Source: Octopus bimaculoides (lineage: Eukaryota). Taken from it: a DNA stretch of 34,191 bases. Shown here piece after piece: positions 2,480 through 34,191 of the stretch. The number at the start of each line of letters is the position of its first letter. Position 1 is the first letter of the stretch. The stretch covers positions 33,673,157 through 33,707,347 of the forward strand of contig NC_068983.1 in the NCBI RefSeq assembly GCF_001194135.2, in the 5' to 3' direction. A program made the position numbers and the translations under genes. The notes beneath the pieces are model-generated. The model ran no database searches, was not told where the DNA came from, and saw only the letters and a list, made by a program, of their open reading frames with translations.

Positions 2480-3570
2480 CTTCTGTATTTCTTAAATGAC
2501 AACAACTCCTCTATGTCTTATGTATTTTTCACGAAAAACATTTGCTGAAATTGTTTCGTCTTGTTTCACAATACTGGCATTTCAATATCATTCTCATCAA
2601 ATCAGTCTTGGTATTTACGTTCTATTTTCCAGTCGGGATACATGCAAAGTGTCTCGGAATTCGATCCAGTTGTCCTGAATATAGAGATCTGAATCTTGCA
2701 TTGTTACTAATGAGAGCATTAGTGTATCCTCAAGCACACAATGCTTATCTTTGGACCTGGGTTAATGGAGATTCAGAAGAGATTTCAATAATTAGCCTTG
2801 AAGTTGACTGCCGTTCCTAATTTTGAGTTTTCACTTGACTGTCATTAGGCAGTGATCCGCATAGATTTGGCAACGCATATGTCGTACCGAACTTTCTGAT
2901 AACAAAGGATGCTGACAATCAAGTGTCAGTGATTAGCGCGTAGGCGCATCTAAGATGTACGGTTCCTTAAAGGGAGTTTAAAAGTGGTGCTTGTCAGAAG
3001 TGAATGGTTCACGGTGCAAAAATGATGGAGCAAAAGTTTGCCATCAATATTGTAGTTGTTTATTCCATTAGTTACTAACACATTCCACCATGTTCTCCGA
3101 TATGTTTCGACCTGGCCATTGAAGTCGCCTAACAATACGAGTTTTGTCTTTTTTGTGGGAATGGTGGAAATTAGTAATGATTGGTCTTCGTAGGAATTAA
3201 CTTTGGATGTTTGATAAATGCTTATTGAGGGGACATGGCAACTTACAAGGTCGAGAAAATTCTGTTGGTAGTCTCAGAATCTTACGTTAATCATTTATGG
3301 ATTTTTTGAAATCTTTTGCAAAGCAGTTTTACATTAGAAAAGCAAAAACAGATTCCCGCTTGTCATATTTATCCTTCCTTGACGAGTAGAATGTGTAGCC
3401 TGCCCCATTTTCCTTCTGCTGCCCAGTCTTGTTTATCATGAAGGGCTGATCTACTTGCAGTTCTATCTACTTTGTTGCTACCAAGCAAAGCGTGTATATT
3501 CCATCCACCAAGCATCAGTGACATATGTTGTTGCTTAATATTTCGACGGCAAGAATTGAATTCCGTCGTC
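2480..3570 (-). mobile_element. Decayed RTE/BovB-clade LINE: APE endonuclease plus linker, truncated before the RT; likely 5' UTR continues to at least ~3950
   Basis: Minus-strand motifs in order: LMLGGWNIHALL (APE N-terminus), ENGAGYTFY, LGDFNGQV...NGINNYNIDGKLLL...LLTSTTFKLPLRNRTS*M...H*HLI, DHCLM, DNWIEFRDTLH, RKYQD*FDEND. Many stops and frameshifts. Confidence 0.88.
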
Positions 3571-4256
3571 AACCATGTTCTACCGAGCAGGAAGGAATGA
3601 AGTAGTAACGTTTGAGGACGTCTTTTCTAGTTTCTTTCTCGTTCTAGGGAGGTGGGCGTTGTGTTCCTGAATAGGGCCGCTCAGACATCAAAGAATCTGC
3701 AGGAGTTCAGCACCGTCTCGTTTGCCAAGCTACAAGCTAATATTAACATGAGCCTCCTAGAATGGTGATTGCGACTGAAAGCTTTCAGCTTTCCAGATTT
3801 GTTATCGCTGACCCTACATCGCCACAGAATATCCAAAGAAGAAAAAAAACTGTACTGAATTCAGTAATAGTTTTCAGGTGAAGTACAACTGTACAGCAAC
3901 TACTACTCTCTCGTCATGCTCTTCTAGTACCCAGTAGCAAGGTAGAATCATGATAAATGAGAAGTGCCGGATGCAGGAGCTGCCAGATTGAGAAATCGTT
4001 TTACTGTCTGCAGGCGCCTCAAAATTGATTTTCTTTTAGGGTTGATCTCCTTGTCTTATGCTTAAATATGTGCAATTTGGTAAGTAGCAGACATTTTATA
4101 ACAACGTATGTACTTTCCAATGAGAAGAGCTAGCCAAGGTTATTTGATGCAGATCAAGTTGCATGTGTTACACCAGAGTCTTCCTTCTAGAGAGATGTTA
4201 AAACAAAGGGTAGTATTCTTTCATGCCAAGCTAAAGGACGATCGTTTTCTCCATTC

Positions 4257-7009: not shown

Positions 7010-7170
7010 CATCGGGGGTCCCACGCAGTTTGCTTCAAGCAAATTAACTGATAATACATTAGTTTGATGGAAGCTATAGTAGAAGACTCACGTAGAAGGC
7101 GCCACGCAGTGGGACTGAACCTGAAATTCTGTGTCTTCTAAACGAATGTAATCGCGCAACCATAGCTCTG
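7010..7170 (-). mobile_element. Diverged SINE head (group 3) with its (TA)-rich tract at 6850-7010
   Basis: gctatagtagaagac...gccacgcagtgggactgaacc is the reverse complement of the heads at 31638 and 34001. Confidence 0.6.
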
Positions 7171-9914: not shown

Positions 9915-10145
9915 GAGTAGCGAGCTGGCAGAAACGTTAGCACACCAGGCGAAACACTGAGCGTTATTTCGTCTGTCTTTACGTTGTGAGTCCAAATTCC
10001 GCCGAGGTCGACTTTACCTTTCATCCTTTCGGGGTCGATTAAAGAAGTACCAGTTACGCACTGTGGTCGATGTAATCACCTTAATCCCTCTGTCTGTCCT
10101 TGTTTGTCCCCTCTATGTTTAGCCCCCTGTGGGCAATGAAGAAAC
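9915..10145 (+). mobile_element. Near full-length SINE (group 2) between microsatellites
   Basis: gagctggcagaaacgttagcac...gagtccaaattccgccgaggtcgactttacctttcatcctttcggggtcgat...gtgggcaatgaagaaac; near-identical reverse complement at 30044-30277. Confidence 0.9.
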
Positions 10146-11334: not shown

Positions 11335-11538
11335 GGGGGTGTTTGTATCTCTGGCCCTAGTGTCGCTTGACAACAGGTGTTGGTGTGTTTACATCTCTCC
11401 ACTTAAGTGGGTCGGCAAAGTATACTGATAAAATAAGTATTAGACCTTGAAAAAAATAATCCTGGGGTCGATTCATTAGACTAAAAGTTTTTCAAGGTGC
11501 TGCTCCAGTATGCCCGCAGTCTGATGACTAAAACAAGT
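11335..11538 (+). mobile_element. 3' module of the composite SINE (group 3)
   Basis: tcgcttgacaacaggtgttggtgtgtttac...cctggggtcgattcattagactaa...gctccagtatgcccgcagtc aligns with 31830-31975 and the reverse complement of 29420-29610. Confidence 0.75.
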
Positions 11539-15400: not shown

Positions 15401-16069
15401 CCTGATGTATAAGATGATTTCACTCATGTTTCTTCAAGTAATTTGATGGTGTTTTCTTTTAAAATAAATAATAATCGTAGATGTCCATAGAATAATTAGG
15501 ATTTTTTTCCAAGTAGTTGTAATTAATTTCACATTGTTACAACAGAATAAATAATACACTAGCGTATAGTGAGGTGAAAATAAGAATTTGATTTCAATTT
15601 TAAATAGCTAATTATAGTTTAATAATTTTAACCATCAATGAGAAGCATTTTAACTATTTCCCTTTAAAATCTAATTACGTTGTGTGTGTGTGTGAGGATT
15701 CTATTTTATTCTTACAAAACCATTGATATGCAGTGTCCATTTTTCATTTATAATTTCAAATATTCAACCATTTAATATCCTATATACAGTAATGCCATTA
15801 TCATATAACTACTTTAGGAATTGTATCAATGTGGGATTTCATCCTAAATCATTGAATTGTGTGAGTGGAAAAGAAAACAAGGAAGTCAATCAATACGATT
15901 GAAATTAAATAACGAATTGAAAATGTAATACCACATTTGTTTAACCAGTAACGCAGGTTCGACATCACTGCGTCGGGTGTTTTGTCAAATCACATTGGAT
16001 TAAACAAATCTTCAAAGTAGAATTTGACAGACACCACTGCCGTCGCCGTCGTCGTCTTCGTCGTCATAA

Positions 16070-16440
16070 CCACCACCACCACCATCATTAACATTTAAGG
16101 TCATTAAGGTGGCATGTTTTGGACGTTTTTGGTAAGATTAGGCAGGCCACAGGGACACAAACCGTTTGAATTTTTCTGTGTCGCATTGGCATGGTTTTTA
16201 CGGCTGGATGACCTTCCTAATACCAACCAATTTACAGCGTGTTCAGGTCCTTTTTCTTTCTGCGTCACCGGCACAAGTGACCTAGTGAGGTCGCCGAGTA
16301 ACTTGGATGACAAAGAAAGACCGCGAAGAAGTAAGACTGAGAGGAGGAGATGGGACGTGATTTCTATGCTAGATATTGAATGACTAAAGTGTGACAGAGA
16401 CAACACCAAGTGTCTCGCTATAGAGGAGATAGATACAAAG
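16070..16440 (-). mobile_element. RTE-type 3' tail repeat (LINE end or LINE-derived SINE)
   Basis: Plus strand shows (CAC/CAT)n-atttaa...ggcatgttttggacg...tggcatggtttttacggctggatgaccttcctaataccaacca, recognised as the reverse complement of an RTE-like 3' end with a (GAT/GGT)n tail. Confidence 0.6.
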
Positions 16441-16561
16441 CTACTGCATATTAAAAACGTGTGGGTGAGAGTAAGAAAGAAATAGACATGGCGCTGACGA
16501 TGAGTATCTCAATATGAAGATGGTTGACTTATGAGGATCATATGATAGGAAGTTTCATAAG

Positions 16562-16631
16562 TGTGAGGGGAGGAAAATATTATAGATGATTAGCGATGTG
16601 AAGGGAGGAAAATATAATAGATGATTGGCGA
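16562..16631. repeat. 35-bp tandem duplication in a purine-rich tract
   Basis: tgtgaggggaggaaaatattatagatgattagcga vs tgtgaagggaggaaaatataatagatgattggcga (3 mismatches). Confidence 0.9.
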
Positions 16632-18413
16632 TGAGGAAAAAAGATGAATATACCGATTGATGAAAAAATATGGGGAAGTGCCTGATGAAAGATGCCAGTA
16701 TGGGAGGCGGATAAGCTGAAAAATATTGGGCTAGATCAGGGAGGGGCAGAATGATGTGCAAGGTGTCGGAGCGGTGAGGAGCCAAATGTAGAGGTACATA
16801 AGTAGGCAATGAAAAGTGGGGCGTGGTGGTAGATACGAGAGATGTAATATTAATAATAAGGTATGACAGGCAAGAGATAACAATGACTGCGGGTAAAGAA
16901 AGGAGGTGGTTAGCGGAAATAGAGTTGGTAAGGATGATAATGAGAAATGGAATTGTCTCAGAGGAGAGAAGAGGGAAATAACTAGAGGCACCCTATTCGC
17001 TGAGAGATTCTGAACTGCATTTTGAAGTGAGAGAGCATTTAAAAAAATGTTATGAAGGTATGATTAGGTTCTTAAAATGCACTCGTTGTAACCATTGTTG
17101 TTTCTCAGTGTTGACAAATTTTCAGTAACGTTTCGCCAATATCCTTATATGATATCGTTAGTATTTCATTTTTATTACTCTCGCACTTGTGGAATGGTGC
17201 GTCAACACCTCATATTGGTGGGGAGTCTGATAATCGTTCCTTATTTCATAATAGTGATTGCTCGACACAATTCTCTCTTATGCCAATATAGGAGTCACTT
17301 GGTGCTATGTTCGTTGTTTAACCAAATCCTCTGACTAAAAGAAGCGGTTTTCTAAATGGATATTATTCCACCTTGTGATTTCCAGCAGAATATTAATTAT
17401 ACGCAGCACGTTAACAGCAAGCATTCACGTTTCATCCATTATTTTCAGTGCAGAATGATTTATTCTTTCACTAAGATCTAATACGAGCAAAACATGTTCA
17501 GAGTTATCTCGCTTACTTCCACAAATGGTTTAATAAACATGATGTAGTTAATACCATTTTCCCTCGATAGCAAAATATTTTTAATTACGCTTTTGACTAC
17601 CTCTGTATTACTGTACTATTGATTTACATACAGATGACATTTCTAAGTAATTAGCATCAATGGTTTATTTATTAACTTTCCTTTGAATCATTCAAGCTGG
17701 AGAGGATAGGCAAGTTTTTTTTTTAATTATCTGACATTTTTTTAAAAATCCAAACTATTCTTTGGGAATTACCTCTTAATGAGCTAAGGCTAAATACTGG
17801 TTCAGTTATAATATGCGTAACGTCTGTCCTAGGAAATATTGATTTAAGAGCACTAAGCTTATCAAAAGAGCTTTAGCAATCCACTTGATCTCTGCAAAAA
17901 TACTTACTCACAGAAGGAGTGCAGAAAATGGATGAATAAGGTGTGCGATACAACGCTACACTTTACTTTTAAAAGCATACACATGCTCCCTTTAATCCCC
18001 TCATTTGATATGATTATCAAATCTGAAGATCAAGTTATTTGGTGTAATTGAAGTATATTTATCAAAACCTGTAATTTAGTCAAATCACGTTGTATGTGAC
18101 TTCAGAAATAAGAAAAGCAGAAACTGAACTTAATAGCCTCTGCTATTACTTCTTAAATAACAAATAAAAAAATTGTACCTAAATAACTTTAAAACTAAAT
18201 GCTCAAGTAATACAACCTAAATATATAGTGTGAGTTTAACTTCCGTTTCTAGCAACCTGTATCATAACAGGAGAAGGGTGCAAATATTTTATGCTTAACT
18301 TCAGTCTCCACTAAGTTCAATGTTGTAATTTTTAATGCACACTTCAGATTGAGTCATGTTTTAGAGTAATGTGAAACAACAAAGTTGTAAGTTGTATTCT
18401 GTAATACAATGTG

Positions 18414-18730: not shown

Positions 18731-19110
18731 AGTCCCAAGAAGTAACATATTGTAAAATGTAGAAATTGCTCTTCAACAATAAGTATATAACTGATAAAAT
18801 ACTGGAACCAACGCTCTGAAATGCAGCTTTATTATCTTATGGAACGTAATGTTACATACTGCAAGCTGTGTGATGAATATATAAATATCTCTGTATAGTG
18901 GAGCAGTATAACTTATAAGCTGTATTACAAAGCATAATAATCTGTTGAAAAATATAATCTGTACAAAATTGCGTAATTCCCGAATTATTGTTCGTAAAGT
19001 GTAACATATACTTCACTGCGATAAAAATAAATATATTTTTGCGATCTGCAGAAATATTGTTAATAAATTGTTAATTTAAATCTTTATATGTTTGTGAGTT
19101 TTATTAATAA

Positions 19111-19311
19111 ATTAGGGAACGATATATACTTTCATTCATAAATTTATATTGAAATAAATACTTTCATGATTGTATTAATCGTGATCAGATTTATAAATGA
19201 AATATATATATTAGTGAACGATAGATACTTTCATTCATAAATTTATAATGAAATAAATACTTTCATGATTGTATTAATCGTGATCAGATTTATAAAGGAA
19301 ATATATATATT
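19111..19311. repeat. 99-bp tandem duplication
   Basis: 19111-19209 vs 19210-19308, 4 substitutions, no indels. Confidence 0.97.
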
Positions 19312-19872: not shown

Positions 19873-20130
19873 ATAATGGATATGTAATAAACTATATTAT
19901 TTTTTGATAGTTTCTCAATGTATAATTTCCTAAGAACATTACAAGAAAGCATAAATCCAAATTAAGCTTATTTCTTAATTTACCAATTGCACAACTGTGT
20001 TGGGAGGGGCAATTTGTTATGTATTGAAATATTGCAGTACGGTCTTCTTGCATGAATTATGCAAAGGTATATTAGAAAGGTTTATATATGAATCTATATG
20101 TATACATATTCATACACATACTCATTCACT

Positions 20131-20167
<37 letters not shown>

Positions 20168-20865
20168 ACGCACACAAACACACGTATGTGTGTATGTATA
20201 CATTCACATGAAACTCGGTATTTCGGTTTATATGACGTTACTTTAAACTGTTGTTATAATATATTCCCTTACTAACAATAATATATTCCAATGATTATTT
20301 TTGCATTCTTGCGGTGACGTCCGATAAATTATCAAATATATCTTCCTTCATTTAATAGATATTGTATAATAATGAATAAGTTTATACATGTTAGTGCATT
20401 GATGATATTCAATATGAATACTCTGAATTAAACATAATAACATACCCGTAAATTAATCTTTTAGTAAAATCCCGTTTATAAGAGTTCTCTTTTAAACAGA
20501 TTCGTTTCATTTAAACATATAGATTATAGTAATATTACAAAAGGGTGCATTTCCATTTACCATATATAAATAGATATTCTCCAGTCCTTTTATATTAATG
20601 TACATAGGAGCTGGCAGAAAACATGCACAAACGCATGTGCGTATGTGTGTGTATGCGGATGCGTCTATGTGTAGATGTGTATATATGTATATATATATAT
20701 ATANNNNNNNNNNTATATAGGTTATGAGCGAAAGTGATGTCAATTAGACCCAGAGGTTTTAGGCAATGCTGAGTATGTGCTGTGGATAGACCATAGTCAA
20801 GCTCCAGGTTCGGTGATTATGCGAATAAGGGGTCCAACTTAGGTCATATATCAGCGTGTGAATAT

Positions 20866-20875
20866 NNNNNNNNNN
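20866..20875. other. Assembly gap flanked by an identical 50-bp overlap (20816-20865 = 20876-20925); another gap at 20704-20713
   Basis: Exact duplicate on both sides of 10 N. Confidence 0.95.
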
Positions 20876-20989
20876 ATTATGCGAATAAGGGGTCCAACTT
20901 AGGTCATATATCAGCGTGTGAATATAAGGATTTCGTAATGAGATAAAGAACCAAGGCTGTGTATAATATAGTACATTTATAAATAGAAG

Positions 20990-21036
20990 GTCTTAGAGCT
21001 GTTTCCAGGATATTTATTATACCCCTTCATCGGAGA
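20990..21036 (-). ncRNA. Minimal type-I hammerhead ribozyme (Penelope-type), mutated
   Basis: gtct-CCGATGA-agg-ggata(ataaa)tatcc-tg-GAAA-c-AGCT-cTA-agac. 4-bp stem I, 5-bp core stem II, palindromic AGCT loop. U4>C and G16.2>C relative to the canonical core. Confidence 0.65.
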
Positions 21037-21227
21037 CGGTGTGAGAGGATGGTTAAGCAATAGTTAGCTTACATAAGATAGGAAATAGAGAAAATGAAAT
21101 TAGGAATATTGTATTTTTAAATCCATTGTTTGAGCAGAATGGTATACATATAAGATTTCAATACCTTGGGAGTAAATCCAATAATCTTTAAGATTGGTCA
21201 TTGCATTTGTAAATCCATTATTAAGAC

Positions 21228-21417
21228 TCCAGTTCCCTATGAGTGTAATCCAACAGTCTTTGAAGTTGGTCATTCCAAATACAGAGTTTATACACAGTGT
21301 TATTGAATCAAGGGTTCTGTTTAAAGAGAGCCCTTGATTCAATGACACTGTGTATAGACTCTGTATATGGAATGACCAATTTCAAAGACAGTTGGATTTT
21401 ACTCATAGGCAATTGGA
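21228..21417. repeat. Long inverted repeat: 91-bp arms, 8-nt loop
   Basis: 21228-21318 vs 21327-21417: 81/91 Watson-Crick, 6 G-U (plus strand), 4 mismatches, no indels; partial third direct copy at ~21170-21205. Confidence 0.97.
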
Positions 21418-21671
21418 CGTTTGTGTTCTTTATGTCCTACCTTTGATTTATCTAAGCAGTGCAACACTCAACCTGTTGACTATTTTGTTATAATTCAGAC
21501 ACACATACACACACACACTCACACACATAAATACATACATATATACATACATGCATACATACATGCATACATACATTCATATATATTTGCAATGAGGAGT
21601 TGTTTTGAGTAGACTTTCAGTCATGTCTAGTGGGACCAAAAACTCGTTTTGGTGGTGAAGGAGGACTAGGA

Positions 21672-21932
<261 letters not shown>

Positions 21933-22581
21933 ACTGGAGAAAAATAAAGATTAAAGAAAAGAACAATATTTCTAAAATTTCTGGTTACCAATTAAAAAAA
22001 AATACAGAAATTAAGTTAGCACTTATTTTCTATTTTACGTCTCAAATATGTCTTAGCTTTCTTATCTGTTGTCTATAGACATTGTAAGAGTTTTATTAAA
22101 TTTATTCTTTATAGCTTTAATCCAATTCGGCAGACTCCAAGATATACTTTTACTCTCACATATTATCTTCTGTGTTATAGGATTATGGAGACGGCGTTAT
22201 TTAATAAACTAGAAACCTGATTAAAAATGATTATGTACATATATAAAGAGAAAAAAACCCCAGTCCTGTTTCTTTCTAGAAATATCTCTATTTTGTATGT
22301 TATCTCTTTCACAGTTTTTTTTTCTAGTTTCTTTTTATCTCAATCTAAATCTACATCTTTTAACTATTTACTTCGTAGTTGAAACATTAATAACGTGAAT
22401 GATACTGTTGATGCCTTTTATTCCTCCCCCTCCTCTCCTTTTTCTCCCCGCCTCTTCTTCTCTTCCTCTCCTCTCCCCTCCCCTCCCTTCCTATTACCTT
22501 CCCGCGTTCTCCCCACTCCTCCTCCTCCACCTCGTATCCTTTTCCTCCGCTCCACCATGCTTCTTCATCTTGTATTAAGTG

Positions 22582-22795
22582 GGTAGAATCTTCAGTGCGT
22601 CGAACAAAATGCTTAGCAGTTTTTTTTCAGCTCTTTATGTTCTGAGTTCACTCAAAACGTACAAAAAGTGGTCAGCTGGGTTTCTCTTAATTTTGGGGTT
22701 GATAAACAAAAAGACCAGTTTATTACTAAGCTTGATGTAACCAACTACCCCCATGCCCCTAAAAATGGTGGCTTGTGTGAAAATTCGAAAACTTA
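22582..22795 (+). mobile_element. Old diverged SINE (group 2)
   Basis: ggtagaatcttcagtgcgtcgaacaaaatgcttagc...tatgttctgagttcac...ttggggttgataaac collinear with 9915-10070. Confidence 0.6.
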
Positions 22796-22863
22796 ATTAT
22801 TGTACTACCATTCGGTCAGCTTTGATCTACCATATATATATGTATATATATACGTATATATAA

Positions 22864-23560: not shown

Positions 23561-23687
23561 CTTTGCAAGGTTTGTTTGTTTTAATTTAATTTTATAATTT
23601 AAATTACTCTGTTAGCTACTCACGTGCTTTTCTACTTGTTGAAACTTTAACACATACCTTTACAAACACACACACACACAAAAGCCC

Positions 23688-23748
23688 GCATACACGCACA
23701 TGCACGCACATGCACGCACATGCACGCACATGCACGCACATGCACACG
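23688..23748. repeat. 10-bp unit tandem repeat (GCACATGCAC)n
   Basis: About five consecutive units just upstream of the mariner ORF remnant. Confidence 0.9.
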
Positions 23749-23749
23749 T

Positions 23750-24517
23750 CATCCGCTGAGGTCGCACTTACACTTGGTGCTTCTTCGTTTTGAAGTGCTT
23801 CTTTCCTATGCATCGCTTTTTGCGATGGCTGACACGAAGGAGCAAAGTGCTTCCGTGAAATCCTGTATTCTGCAGGGGAAAACGGCGGCCGAATCAGTTG
23901 TCATCTTCTAACAGCTTACAAGGACGCTGTCATGAGCAAGTTGCACGTTTGCAGGTGGTTTCCACGCTTTAGGAATGGTCACTTGTCGCTTGAACACCAA
24001 CCTCGTTCAGGACGACCGTCGAACTCCCGAACGATTGAAGAAAGTCAGGAAATGTTATGAACTGAACTTGGAGAACCGTCACCGAACATTTGGCGAACTT
24101 GTTGATATGACTGGTGCCAACGAATTATCAGGGAGTAATTGCGAATGAAAAGAGCTCCAGCAAACTTTGTGCCTCACTTGCTCACGGAAGACCCAAATCA
24201 GTTACAACTGAATGCGTGTCGTGAATTGAAAGAACAGTAGGAAGGTGATCCGGACCTTTCTTCGAAAGTCATCACTGGTGATGGAAGCTGGTGCTCAGGT
24301 TTGCAGTTGTGGAAGAGGTAAAGAAAACAACGATGGAGGCGTTAAAATGCGTCACTTGGCAACAGTTTCGGCACTGCTTCGATCAGAGGAAAACGCGCCT
24401 GGATCGATGCATTGTTTCGAAAAGAGAATACTTTGAAGGCGATAAAAGTGTAACCGTATAAAACTAAGGGAATAAAATTATACTGCAGATTTCCGGTTTC
24501 ATTTGGGTACACCTTGT
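23750..24517 (+). mobile_element. Internally deleted, decayed mariner DNA transposon (transposase remnant 23825-24453)
   Basis: MADTKEQSASVKSCILQGKTAAESVVIF, TAYKDAVMSKLHVCRWFPRFRNGHLSLEHQPRSGRPS, MKRAPANFVPHLLT (WVP-like), KVITGDGSWC, then a jump to RFAVVEEVKKTTMEALK...LDRCIVSKREYFEGD. Probable 3' TIR at 24491-24517; no 5' TIR seen. Confidence 0.92.
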
Positions 24518-26491: not shown

Positions 26492-27020
26492 TTAAAAGAA
26501 ATTTTGCAGCGCTGACTGCAGAAATAGATCATGTCACATGTGTCAGAAAAATATTTCGAAGCAATAATGTATTTTTTTTTTCGTAGTCCACGTCGAACAG
26601 AAATGTGTGACGACGCTATGTTTCATATTCATATATGAGAAAAAATATATATATATACAAACATACATACGCACACACATTAACACACGCACACACAAGT
26701 ATACACCAACACATATATGAATATATGCATGTATACATATATATGGGCGTGTGTGTGCGTGCATGTGTGTATGTGTGTGCGTGCATGTGTGTATGTGTGT
26801 GTGTGTGTGTGTGGTGGTGGGGGGGGGGTATGTTGTGTTGTAAACATTTAATAACTGCAAAGTATATTAGAACTATATTTTGAATAGAGAGAATGTTCAC
26901 GTTTAATATAAAAAAAACAAACAAAAAGTTTTCAGCTTCTTCAGACCTTTGCTCCAAGCAAAACGGTTAATCCTGGCGAATCTCTAAGTAGACTGTTAGC
27001 AACTGCTTTAAATGTGTGTG

Positions 27021-27085
<65 letters not shown>

Positions 27086-27261
27086 NNNNNNNNNNNNNNN
27101 NNNNNNNNNNNNNNNNNNNNNNNNNNNNNNNNNNNNNNNNNNNNNNNNNNNNNNNNNNNNNNNNNNNNNNNNNNNNNNNNNNNNNNNNNNNNNNNNNNNN
27201 NNNNNNNNNNNNNNNNNNNNNNNNNNNNNNNNNNNNNNNNNNNNNNNNNNNNNNNNNNNNN
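27086..27261. other. Assembly gap with (TG)n on the left and (CA)n on the right
   Basis: N run flanked by oppositely oriented dinucleotide arrays. Confidence 1.
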
Positions 27262-27322
<61 letters not shown>

Positions 27323-29419: not shown

Positions 29420-29648
29420 TTTTTCTTCTTTACGTGTTTCAGTCAATAGACAGCGGCCATGCTGGGGCACCGCCTTCAACAATCTGTTTTAGTCGAATGA
29501 ATCAACCCTAGGACTTATATTTTGTTAAGCCTATTATTTATTCAATCAACCCTTTTCGAATCGCTAAGTCAGACACCAACACTGGTTGTGAAGCGAAGGT
29601 AGGGGACAAACACAGACACAAAAACATACGATATTTGTAAGTATATGT

Positions 29649-29679
<31 letters not shown>

Positions 29680-29835
29680 CGATGGGCTTCTTTCAGTTTC
29701 CGTTTACCAAATCCACTCACAAGTCTTTGGTTGGCGCGAGCCTGTAGTAGAAGACACTTGCCCAAGATGTCACACAGTGAGACTGGAGTCAGAACCATGT
29801 AGTTAGGAATGAAGCTCCTTACCACATAGTCACAG
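29420..29835 (-). mobile_element. Full composite SINE (group 3): tRNA-like head, internal (TA)n, 3' module
   Basis: Reverse complement of the 31638-31975 structure; includes the tail cagtcaatagacagcggccatgctggggcaccgcc. Confidence 0.9.
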
Positions 29836-29855: not shown

Positions 29856-30049
29856 TTTCTACTCTAGGCAAAAGGCCGGAATTTTGTGGGGAGGGGCCCA
29901 GCCGATTAGATCGACACCCGTACGCAACTGGTACTTAATTTATCGACCCCGAAAGGATTAAAGGCAAAGTTGACCTCGGCGGAATTTGAACTCAGAACGT
30001 AAAGACACGAAATACCGCTGAGCATTTCGTCCGGCGTGCTAACGTTTCT
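29856..30049 (-). mobile_element. SINE (group 2) missing its first bases, alternative tail
   Basis: tcgaccccgaaaggattaaaggcaaagttgacctcggcggaatttgaactcagaacg core; fused directly to the next copy. Confidence 0.88.
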
Positions 30050-30277
30050 TAATTCTTTATTGCCCACAAGGGGCTAAACATAGAGAGGACAAACAAGGAC
30101 AGACAAAGGGATTAAGTCGATTACATCTACCTCAGTGCGTAACTGGTGCTTAGTTTATCGACCCCGAAAGGATGAAAGGCAAAGTCGACCTCGGTGGAAT
30201 TTGAACTCAGAGCGTATTGGCAGACGAAATACCGCTAAGCAGTTCGCCAGGCGTGCTAATGTTTCTGCCAGCTCACC
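30044..30277 (-). mobile_element. Full-length SINE (group 2)
   Basis: Reverse complement of 9915-10145 along its length, including the tail. Confidence 0.9.
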
Positions 30278-31637: not shown

Positions 31638-31975
31638 GGGTAAGCTTGCTTACCAACCACATGGTCCCGGGTTCAGTCCACTGCGTGTCATCTTGGGCAA
31701 GTGTCTTCTACTATAGACTCGGGCCGACCAAAGCCTTGTGAGTGGATTTGGTAGACGGAAACTGAAAGAAGCCTGTCGTATATATGTATATATATATATA
31801 TATATATGTAGGTGTGTATGTGTTTGTATGTCTGTGTTTGTCCCCCCAACATCACTTGACAACCGATGCTGGTGTGTTTATGTTCCCGTAACTTAGTGGT
31901 TCGGCAAAAGAGACCGATAGAATAAGTACTAGGCTTCCAAAGAATAAGTCCTGAGGTCGATTTGTTCGACTAAAG
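31638..31975 (+). mobile_element. Composite SINE (group 3), ending at a gap
   Basis: gcttgcttaccaaccacatggtcccgggttcagtcc...ggaaactgaaagaagcctgtcg-(TA)n-gtctgtgtttgtccccc...gtcgatttgttcgactaaag. Confidence 0.92.
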
Positions 31976-34000: not shown

Positions 34001-34191
34001 GGTGCAGGAGTGGCTGTGTTGTGGTAAGTAGATTGCTTACCAACCACATACTTCCGGGTTCAGTGCCACTGCGTGGCATCTTGGGCAAATGTCTTCTACT
34101 ATAGCCTTGGCCCGACGAAAGATTTGTGAGTGGATATCGTAGACGGAAACTAAGAGAAGCCCGTCGTATATATATATATATATATATATAT
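34001..34191 (+). mobile_element. Composite SINE (group 3) head plus start of internal (TA)n, cut by the window edge
   Basis: gcaggagtggctgtg (A box)...ccgggttcagtgcc (B box)...gaagcccgtcg-(TA)n. Confidence 0.9.

Follow-up and report, generated by a model that had tools for sequence, protein, structure and literature searches.

A 190-nucleotide palindrome in the Octopus bimaculoides genome that most likely is an old in-situ duplication behaving like neutral DNA

Genomic context of the palindrome

The window analysed here, a stretch of 34,191 nt of the Octopus bimaculoides genome (contig NC_068983.1, positions 33,673,157 to 33,707,347 of the forward strand; all coordinates below are those of the window), has a G+C content of 35% and is dense in microsatellites. 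Within it, positions 21228-21417 form a palindrome of 190 nt that consists of a left arm (21228-21322, + strand), which we read as the native source copy and denote unit B, and a right arm (21323-21417, + strand), which is the inverted copy of the left one. Local alignment revealed, at 21108-21206 (+ strand; unit A), a direct paralogue, older and diverged, of the left flank and of the outer half of the left arm, and the left flank itself (21200-21227, + strand) is part of this older direct repeat. The region contains no recognisable gene, RNA family or mobile-element hallmark. Open frames running through the arms retrieved neither a homologue nor a database record when used as protein bait, two open frames of the window gave no record either, a tRNA scan gave no match, and no Rfam family reached its gathering score anywhere in the window. 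Furthermore, 12-mers from the arms, searched as text strings in the literature, yielded only irrelevant matches, and two IUPAC patterns of the arms matched nothing in metagenome and prokaryote-genome collections, nor did one of them in viral contigs, these collections being unlikely to hold the host genome.

Several other features of the window deserve mention in their own right. Exact 50-nt copies at 20816-20865 and 20876-20925, ~300 nt upstream of the hairpin, surround a gap of 10 N, which most likely reflects an assembly artefact, with overlapping contigs left unmerged at the scaffolding gap. An apparent 160-nt 'palindrome' at 27013-27305, in which a 176-N gap separates a (TG)n from a (CA)n tract, is an assembly gap inside inverted microsatellites and is not comparable to the hairpin at 21228-21417. 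Downstream of the hairpin, three microsatellites follow in a row, namely (ACAT)n at 21499-21585, (AGA)n at 21671-21714 and (GA)56 at 21821-21932. At 19107-19311, a 99-nt unit is present in 2.1 tandem repeats with 95% identity, a young local direct duplication which indicates that small local duplications are active in the region. The most G+C-rich kilobase of the window (16001-17000; 0.43) is strongly skewed toward purines (GC skew +0.33, AT skew +0.18); it includes a tandem repeat of 35 nt at 16562-16633 and gave no match to a protein or RNA family.

Remains of mobile elements are scattered over the window. A decayed, internally deleted remnant of a mariner-type transposase lies at 23650-24460 (+ strand), with an N-terminal HTH_48 match under the Pfam cut-off (E = 1.7e-4) and a recognisable C-terminal '...YFEGD' frame; neither the composite of this remnant, which is too decayed, nor an alignment of SINE frames retrieved a homologue by word index. 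A frameshifted fragment of a LINE endonuclease (2953-3626, - strand; Exo_endo_phos_2-like) has 445 relatives in a representative library, the best of them at 44% identity; those that carry a name are 'craniofacial development protein 2-like' and proteins with an endonuclease domain, from the annelid Capitella, the horseshoe crab Limulus and the tapeworm Schistocephalus. Moreover, two SINE-like families are present in both orientations, one at 9922-10143, 29900-30049, 30053-30274 and 1423-1549, and the other at 29488-29816, 31643-31974, 34020-34191, 11363-11485 and 7073-7133; the copies are 73-88% identical in pairwise comparisons, and one of the families forms a tandem dimer at 29900-30266. 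These SINE-like repeats served as the neutral controls in the comparisons below.

Structure of the palindrome and its predicted fold

The two 95-nt arms abut with a spacer of 0 nt and align in perfect register without a single indel, with Watson-Crick complementarity at 84 of the 95 positions (88%). The symmetry axis falls between 21322 and 21323, and the self-complementary hexamer TTTAAA, read directly from the sequence at 21320-21325, sits on this axis, flanked by a G·G mismatch (21319/21326). Given that the arms differ by 12% through substitutions alone, a chimeric read cannot be the origin of the palindrome, and an assembly artefact is thus unlikely.

For the RNA of the + strand, a hairpin that spans the entire palindrome (21228-21417) is predicted, with 87 pairs, of which 81 are Watson-Crick and 6 are G·U, four 1x1 mismatches and a loop of 8 nt. 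The minimum free energy of this fold is -140.6 kcal/mol (z = -26 against dinucleotide shuffles), so that the hairpin is far beyond chance, and the 190-nt fold-back that had been noticed by a preceding sequence-only reading of this DNA is real. The RNA of the - strand is predicted to form 81 pairs with -120.4 kcal/mol and is hence ~20 kcal/mol weaker. Next to the loop, the stem of the + strand hairpin is unbroken over 40 pairs (arm positions 52-91; 37 Watson-Crick and 3 G·U) and is ended by the G·G mismatch at arm position 92, which shortens the run of 44 pairs that the sequence-only reading had counted there. The hairpin contains a single T4 run (21397-21400).

An older paralogue crosses the left edge of the palindrome

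Unit A is colinear with 21200-21271, that is, with the 28 nt to the left of the palindrome and the outer half of the left arm. The score of this alignment, 36, compares with 16.7 ± 2.5 for shuffled sequences and was reached by none of 1000 shuffles. The left flank matches unit A in 24 of 28 columns, and the pair 21108-21130/21200-21222 is 87% identical. By contrast, the right flank, taken as its reverse complement, agrees with unit A at only 2 of 28 columns, and beyond 21417 there is no significant reverse-complement match to the left flank or the upstream region (score 22, equalled by 186 of 1000 shuffles). The homology with unit A thus crosses the edge of the palindrome at 21228 and has no counterpart in the right flank, which suggests that the right arm is an inverted duplication that arose in situ; the inverted copy directly adjoins its source, with the arms abutting at 21322/21323.

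The divergence among the three copies bears on the order of events. Over the 50 columns common to all of them, there are 14 differences between unit A and the left arm, 13 between unit A and the right arm, and 6 between the two arms. Being nearly equidistant from the two arms, which are closer to each other, unit A can be used as an outgroup, and the direct duplication appears to have come first. Gene conversion between the arms could keep them artificially similar and make them look younger than unit A, which would weaken this argument on the order of events.

Differences between the arms and their strand polarity

Between the arms there are 11 positions that are not Watson-Crick pairs, comprising 6 transitions and 5 transversions. 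The transversions are 21235 (C·C), 21246 (T·T), 21255 (A·A), 21278 (A·A) and 21319 (G·G), the last of which lies within the apical loop, and the count of 10 arm differences given before is therefore a fair one. All six transitions (21232/21413, 21245/21400, 21265/21380, 21288/21357, 21301/21344 and 21315/21330) produce G·U pairs in the + strand RNA and none produces A·C, with G in the left arm at 21232, 21245 and 21265, and G in the right arm, opposite T, at 21330, 21344 and 21357. This one-sidedness, already put at about 1 in 32 by the sequence-only reading, corresponds to a two-sided p = 0.031 (1/32; n = 6), a value from six sites, tested post hoc, at a locus chosen for its polarity.

We considered whether the polarity follows from a bias of the region as a whole. 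In seven control inverted pairs of the 34 kb window, the G·U:A·C ratio is 59:56 (with 86 transversions), and the G+T fraction of the + strand, with tandem repeats masked, is 0.5035 (z = 1.2). These figures give no indication of a regional strand bias, so that 50:50 is the right null expectation, and strand-biased mutation of the region is rejected as the cause of the polarity. Deamination at CpG is likewise rejected, with none of the six sites in a CpG context.

With unit A as the outgroup, three of the six transitions can be polarised, and all three are A>G changes with the left arm derived (21232, 21245 and 21265). The partial third copy of the sequence-only reading, of which unit A is the extended form, had been said to carry A opposite the G at 21245 and 21265; it does so at 21232 as well, which upholds the A>G direction at these outer sites. 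By the same polarisation, the T of the left arm at 21246 is derived, and so are transversions in the right arm at 21390 and 21410. The 5' neighbour of the + strand G is A or T at all six transition sites, as compared with 45% of the 51 unchanged stem adenosines and 48% of 120 control transitions; the excess has P = 0.008 against the unchanged A sites of the hairpin, 0.012 against the window controls and 0.039 against the purine background. In addition, the arm differences are spaced more evenly than random, with a longest identical run of 13 nt versus 22.8 expected (P = 0.018; eight control repeat pairs gave P from 0.04 to 0.96 in the same test). They also show a weak periodicity of 10.5-11.5 nt (Rayleigh p about 0.02-0.05, several periods having been tried).

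Thus, the strand polarity was rightly observed, but it is only nominally beyond chance and its non-randomness is not established. Most economically, the six-for-six outcome can be regarded as one of a small sample. Should the polarity be genuine, its source would be an input of A>G mutations specific to one strand rather than selection on pairing, for reasons considered below, and the signal of such an input is a weak, unproven hint.

Origin of the palindrome

We propose that the palindrome is an in-situ inverted duplication of ~95 nt of local sequence that now most likely is in neutral decay, an explanation that we prefer over the others and hold with middling confidence. In this scenario, an older direct duplication would first have given rise to unit A (21108-21206) and to unit B together with its left flank (21200-21322), after which ~95 nt of the downstream unit would have been duplicated in place in inverted orientation, without a spacer. 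The likely event would be a replication template switch or a fold-back centred on the TTTAAA microhomology, and it is possible that this hexamer served for the strand switch. Afterwards, point substitutions would have taken the arms to 88% identity, without indels and without removal of mispairs. Replication template switching is known to produce perfectly paired hairpins in a single event, with mismatches gathered later (PMC10710096), but the stems described for such events are tens of nucleotides long, as opposed to 95 nt here. Against neutral decay in particular stand the nominal significance of the polarity (p = 0.031 under the neutral null), the A or T upstream of all six G (P = 0.008-0.039), the A>G direction of all three polarisable transitions and the over-even spacing of the arm differences (P = 0.018).

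Under a mobile origin, the locus would be one copy of a MITE of palindromic type or of a foldback transposable element; the element would once have been larger and have suffered partial deletion, and unit A would be one of its sub-repeats, either internal or adjacent. The inverted symmetry over the whole length is typical of some MITEs, a motif of ~31 nt, present at 21175-21205 and 21247-21277 and again in inverted orientation at 21367-21399, is reminiscent of the sub-repeats in foldback arms, and the window is rich in debris of mobile elements, with its SINE-like copies, LINE endonuclease fragment and mariner remnant. Yet target-site duplications are absent, as had been noted, both at the boundaries proper (with AAGAC preceding the left end and CGTTTG following the right end) and at nearby boundaries, there is no second copy within the 34 kb window, and homology with unit A continues past the left end, where an insertion would have its boundary, with no mirror image of unit A on the right. 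Two specific architectures can be dismissed: a Tc1/mariner-type end (CAGT after TA) is incompatible with the flanking bases, which are TC/GA rather than TA/TA, and an IR/DR arrangement fails for want of an outer repeat on the right side. The proposal of a foldback element thus finds no support, and we regard it as improbable. Still less credible, and in our estimate very improbable, is the other insertional scenario, also put forward in the sequence-only reading, under which Penelope or LINE machinery copied an A-to-I edited hairpin RNA into DNA and integrated it at this site. It would explain the one-strand changes of the A>G type with ADAR-like 5' neighbours, and retroelements do occur in the window, for example the LINE endonuclease fragment at 2953-3273. 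The Penelope remnant that was said to lie 130 bp away, however, was found neither by Pfam nor by Rfam: six-frame Pfam searches of 20200-21500 and about 21930-22830 gave no reverse-transcriptase or GIY-YIG similarity nor any other match, and Rfam gave no hammerhead match in 20000-22500 (E ≤ 10). Moreover, neither an A-tail nor a target-site duplication is present, the left arm runs on into a flank for which an older paralogue exists nearby, and the transversions and total transition count look like ordinary decay in place. The tests run thus disfavour a mobile element and a retro-copied edited RNA, as they do selection on pairing.

Selection on pairing versus strand-specific mutation

The polarity itself can be interpreted in terms of either function or mutation. 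According to the functional interpretation, again one of those offered by the sequence-only reading, the + strand encodes a hairpin RNA (a proto-miRNA, a hairpin siRNA precursor or an ADAR-binding RNA) in which selection tolerates only wobble-compatible transitions. The greater number of pairs on the + strand (87 versus 81, with 20 kcal/mol between the strands), the 40 unbroken pairs next to the loop and the polarity (p = 0.031) agree with this proposal, the predicted shape of the hairpin is compatible with a hairpin-RNA or endo-siRNA locus, and there are parallels in engineered G:U transgenes that break the inverted repeat in DNA while keeping the RNA stem (PMC9263138) and in young hairpins born by template switching, which can turn into miRNA genes (PMC10710096). 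Against it, the four transversions in the stem, which break a pair on either strand, occur at a neutral proportion: the transition:transversion ratio is 6:4-5 in the hairpin and 1.34 in the seven control inverted pairs of the window. Hence mispairs are not purged, and selection on RNA pairing is left without support. The multinomial likelihood of the observed outcome (6 G·U, 0 A·C, 4 transversions) is 0.004 under the neutral null, 0.03 under the best model in which all mispairs are purged and 0.25 under a model with transitions on one strand only. In likelihood, a strand bias of purely mutational origin accordingly surpasses the purging model ~7-fold, and the skew, if real, looks mutational rather than selective. 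Furthermore, the stem far exceeds that of animal pri-miRNAs, which is roughly 35 bp (PMC10710096); set against a precursor with a stem of ~35 bp and a loop of at least 10 nt, the hairpin has a predicted stem of 87 bp and a loop of 8 nt. A relaxed Rfam search recovered only plant long-hairpin MIR families, on both strands and at best with 64 versus 99 bits; such sub-threshold matches are generic, given that any long perfect stem yields them. Molluscs also have no detected dedicated endogenous siRNA pathway, and editing has been suggested as the fate of their long dsRNA (PMC12479628). Taken together, these observations make a functional hairpin RNA under selection on pairing quite unlikely.

The mutational interpretation retains the in-situ origin and views the polarity as the footprint of a strand-specific WA>WG input that acts on the hairpin-forming DNA or on a + strand transcript. 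We give it a minor share of probability, clearly below that of neutral decay and above that of the functional and insertional scenarios. One route would be ADAR editing of the + strand stem, with G later fixed at the edited sites, and the other would be error-prone copying of the hairpin template by an enzyme of the polymerase-eta type. DNA polymerase eta has a mutational hotspot at WA, where it causes A>G changes, and the 5' A/T context at the hairpin fits the ADAR motif and this hotspot equally well. The ADAR motif disfavours G on the upstream side and, in invertebrates including octopus, favours A on the downstream side (PMC5625713). The observations in favour are the + strand G·U outcome of all six transitions, the A>G direction at three of three polarisable sites, the lack of CpG at any of the six, the A or T upstream of each G and the superior likelihood of the one-strand model. 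By its predicted fold, the hairpin would be long, near-perfect intramolecular dsRNA of the kind subject to ADAR hyper-editing, with 87 pairs and a longest run of 40. On the opposite side, transitions are not in excess over transversions, and if all six were special, ordinary mutation would have given 0 transitions beside 4-5 transversions; there are only six sites, several of the tests were devised post hoc and polarity was the very reason for choosing the locus; and the region as a whole has no strand bias. Moreover, we know of no established route from editing to germline A>G change at an unselected locus. That the + strand is transcribed and adenosines edited by ADAR have been fixed as genomic G, so that the strand-specific WA>WG changes are tied to dsRNA, is an unlikely special case. 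Equally doubtful, as a corollary, is that a palindrome born by template switching has drifted to a form that is mismatched as DNA and paired as RNA, a natural counterpart of the engineered G:U hairpins.

The only other local pair in the window with the capacity to form dsRNA offers a limited comparison. It consists of SINE-like copies in opposite orientation at 29648-29779 and 31679-31810, 1.9 kb apart, which are 90% complementary over 132 nt and differ on the + strand by 7 G·U, 3 A·C and 3 transversions. This pair leans the same way as the hairpin, with 6 of its 7 G preceded by A or T, but three of the sites are part of a (TA)n tract, and extension to the full 347-nt alignment abolishes the skew (19:15).

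Relationship to known hairpin-forming systems

Among described systems, inverted duplications by template switching (PMC10710096; bioRxiv 10.1101/2021.04.15.439925) resemble the palindrome in having the inverted copy beside the native source, a short self-complementary sequence at the turn and mismatches that came later; the described events have stems of roughly 30-55 nt and usually a loop, whereas here the arm is 95 nt long and there is no spacer. Palindromic MITEs and foldback transposons share with it the end-to-end inverted symmetry and the sub-repeated arm motif, and differ in the points of target-site duplication, copy number in the window and homology across the supposed end that were given above. 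Drosophila hairpin-RNA (endo-siRNA) loci and young plant MIRNA genes likewise are long, near-perfect hairpins that arose by inverted duplication, but there the inverted copies are of target genes and the Dicer products are what defines the locus, whereas the octopus palindrome is anonymous non-coding DNA. In the engineered G:U hairpin-RNA transgenes (PMC9263138), as here, transitions in an arm remain paired as G·U in the transcript of one strand only; there, every C of one arm was changed and true mismatches are absent, in contrast to the six wobbles split over both arms and the four real mismatches of the palindrome.

On the RNA side, the palindrome resembles the substrates of ADAR hyper-editing (PMC5625713), which are long, near-perfect intramolecular duplexes, as is predicted here, and in whose preferred upstream context the six G are found. 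These substrates are mostly dispersed repeats in opposite orientation within transcripts, and it is the RNA that is edited while the genome stays unchanged. If its + strand is transcribed in an animal that has ADAR, the 87-bp stem would be an ordinary hyper-editing substrate. Loci with the capacity for long, near-perfect dsRNA are exceptionally numerous in octopus (PMC5625713), and hairpins of this sort are accordingly common rather than special.

Implications

The locus is thus most likely an old in-situ palindrome that behaves like neutral DNA, and 21228-21417 is probably an ordinary decaying local palindrome in a repeat-rich animal genome. Two points of method emerge from its analysis: transversion mispairs provide an internal control for claims of selection on pairing, and an older paralogue that extends across the edge of a palindrome tells in-situ duplication from insertion. 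The strand-specific WA>WG input is a minority possibility. Only if one-sided A>G changes with A or T upstream proved general would the locus gain wider importance: sense-strand G·U pairs in excess within diverged palindromes could then be read, from genome sequence alone, as the mark of a hairpin that is transcribed and edited, and would also identify the strand concerned. Furthermore, if this held true generally, it would point to a route from RNA editing, or from hairpin-induced error-prone replication, to heritable change.
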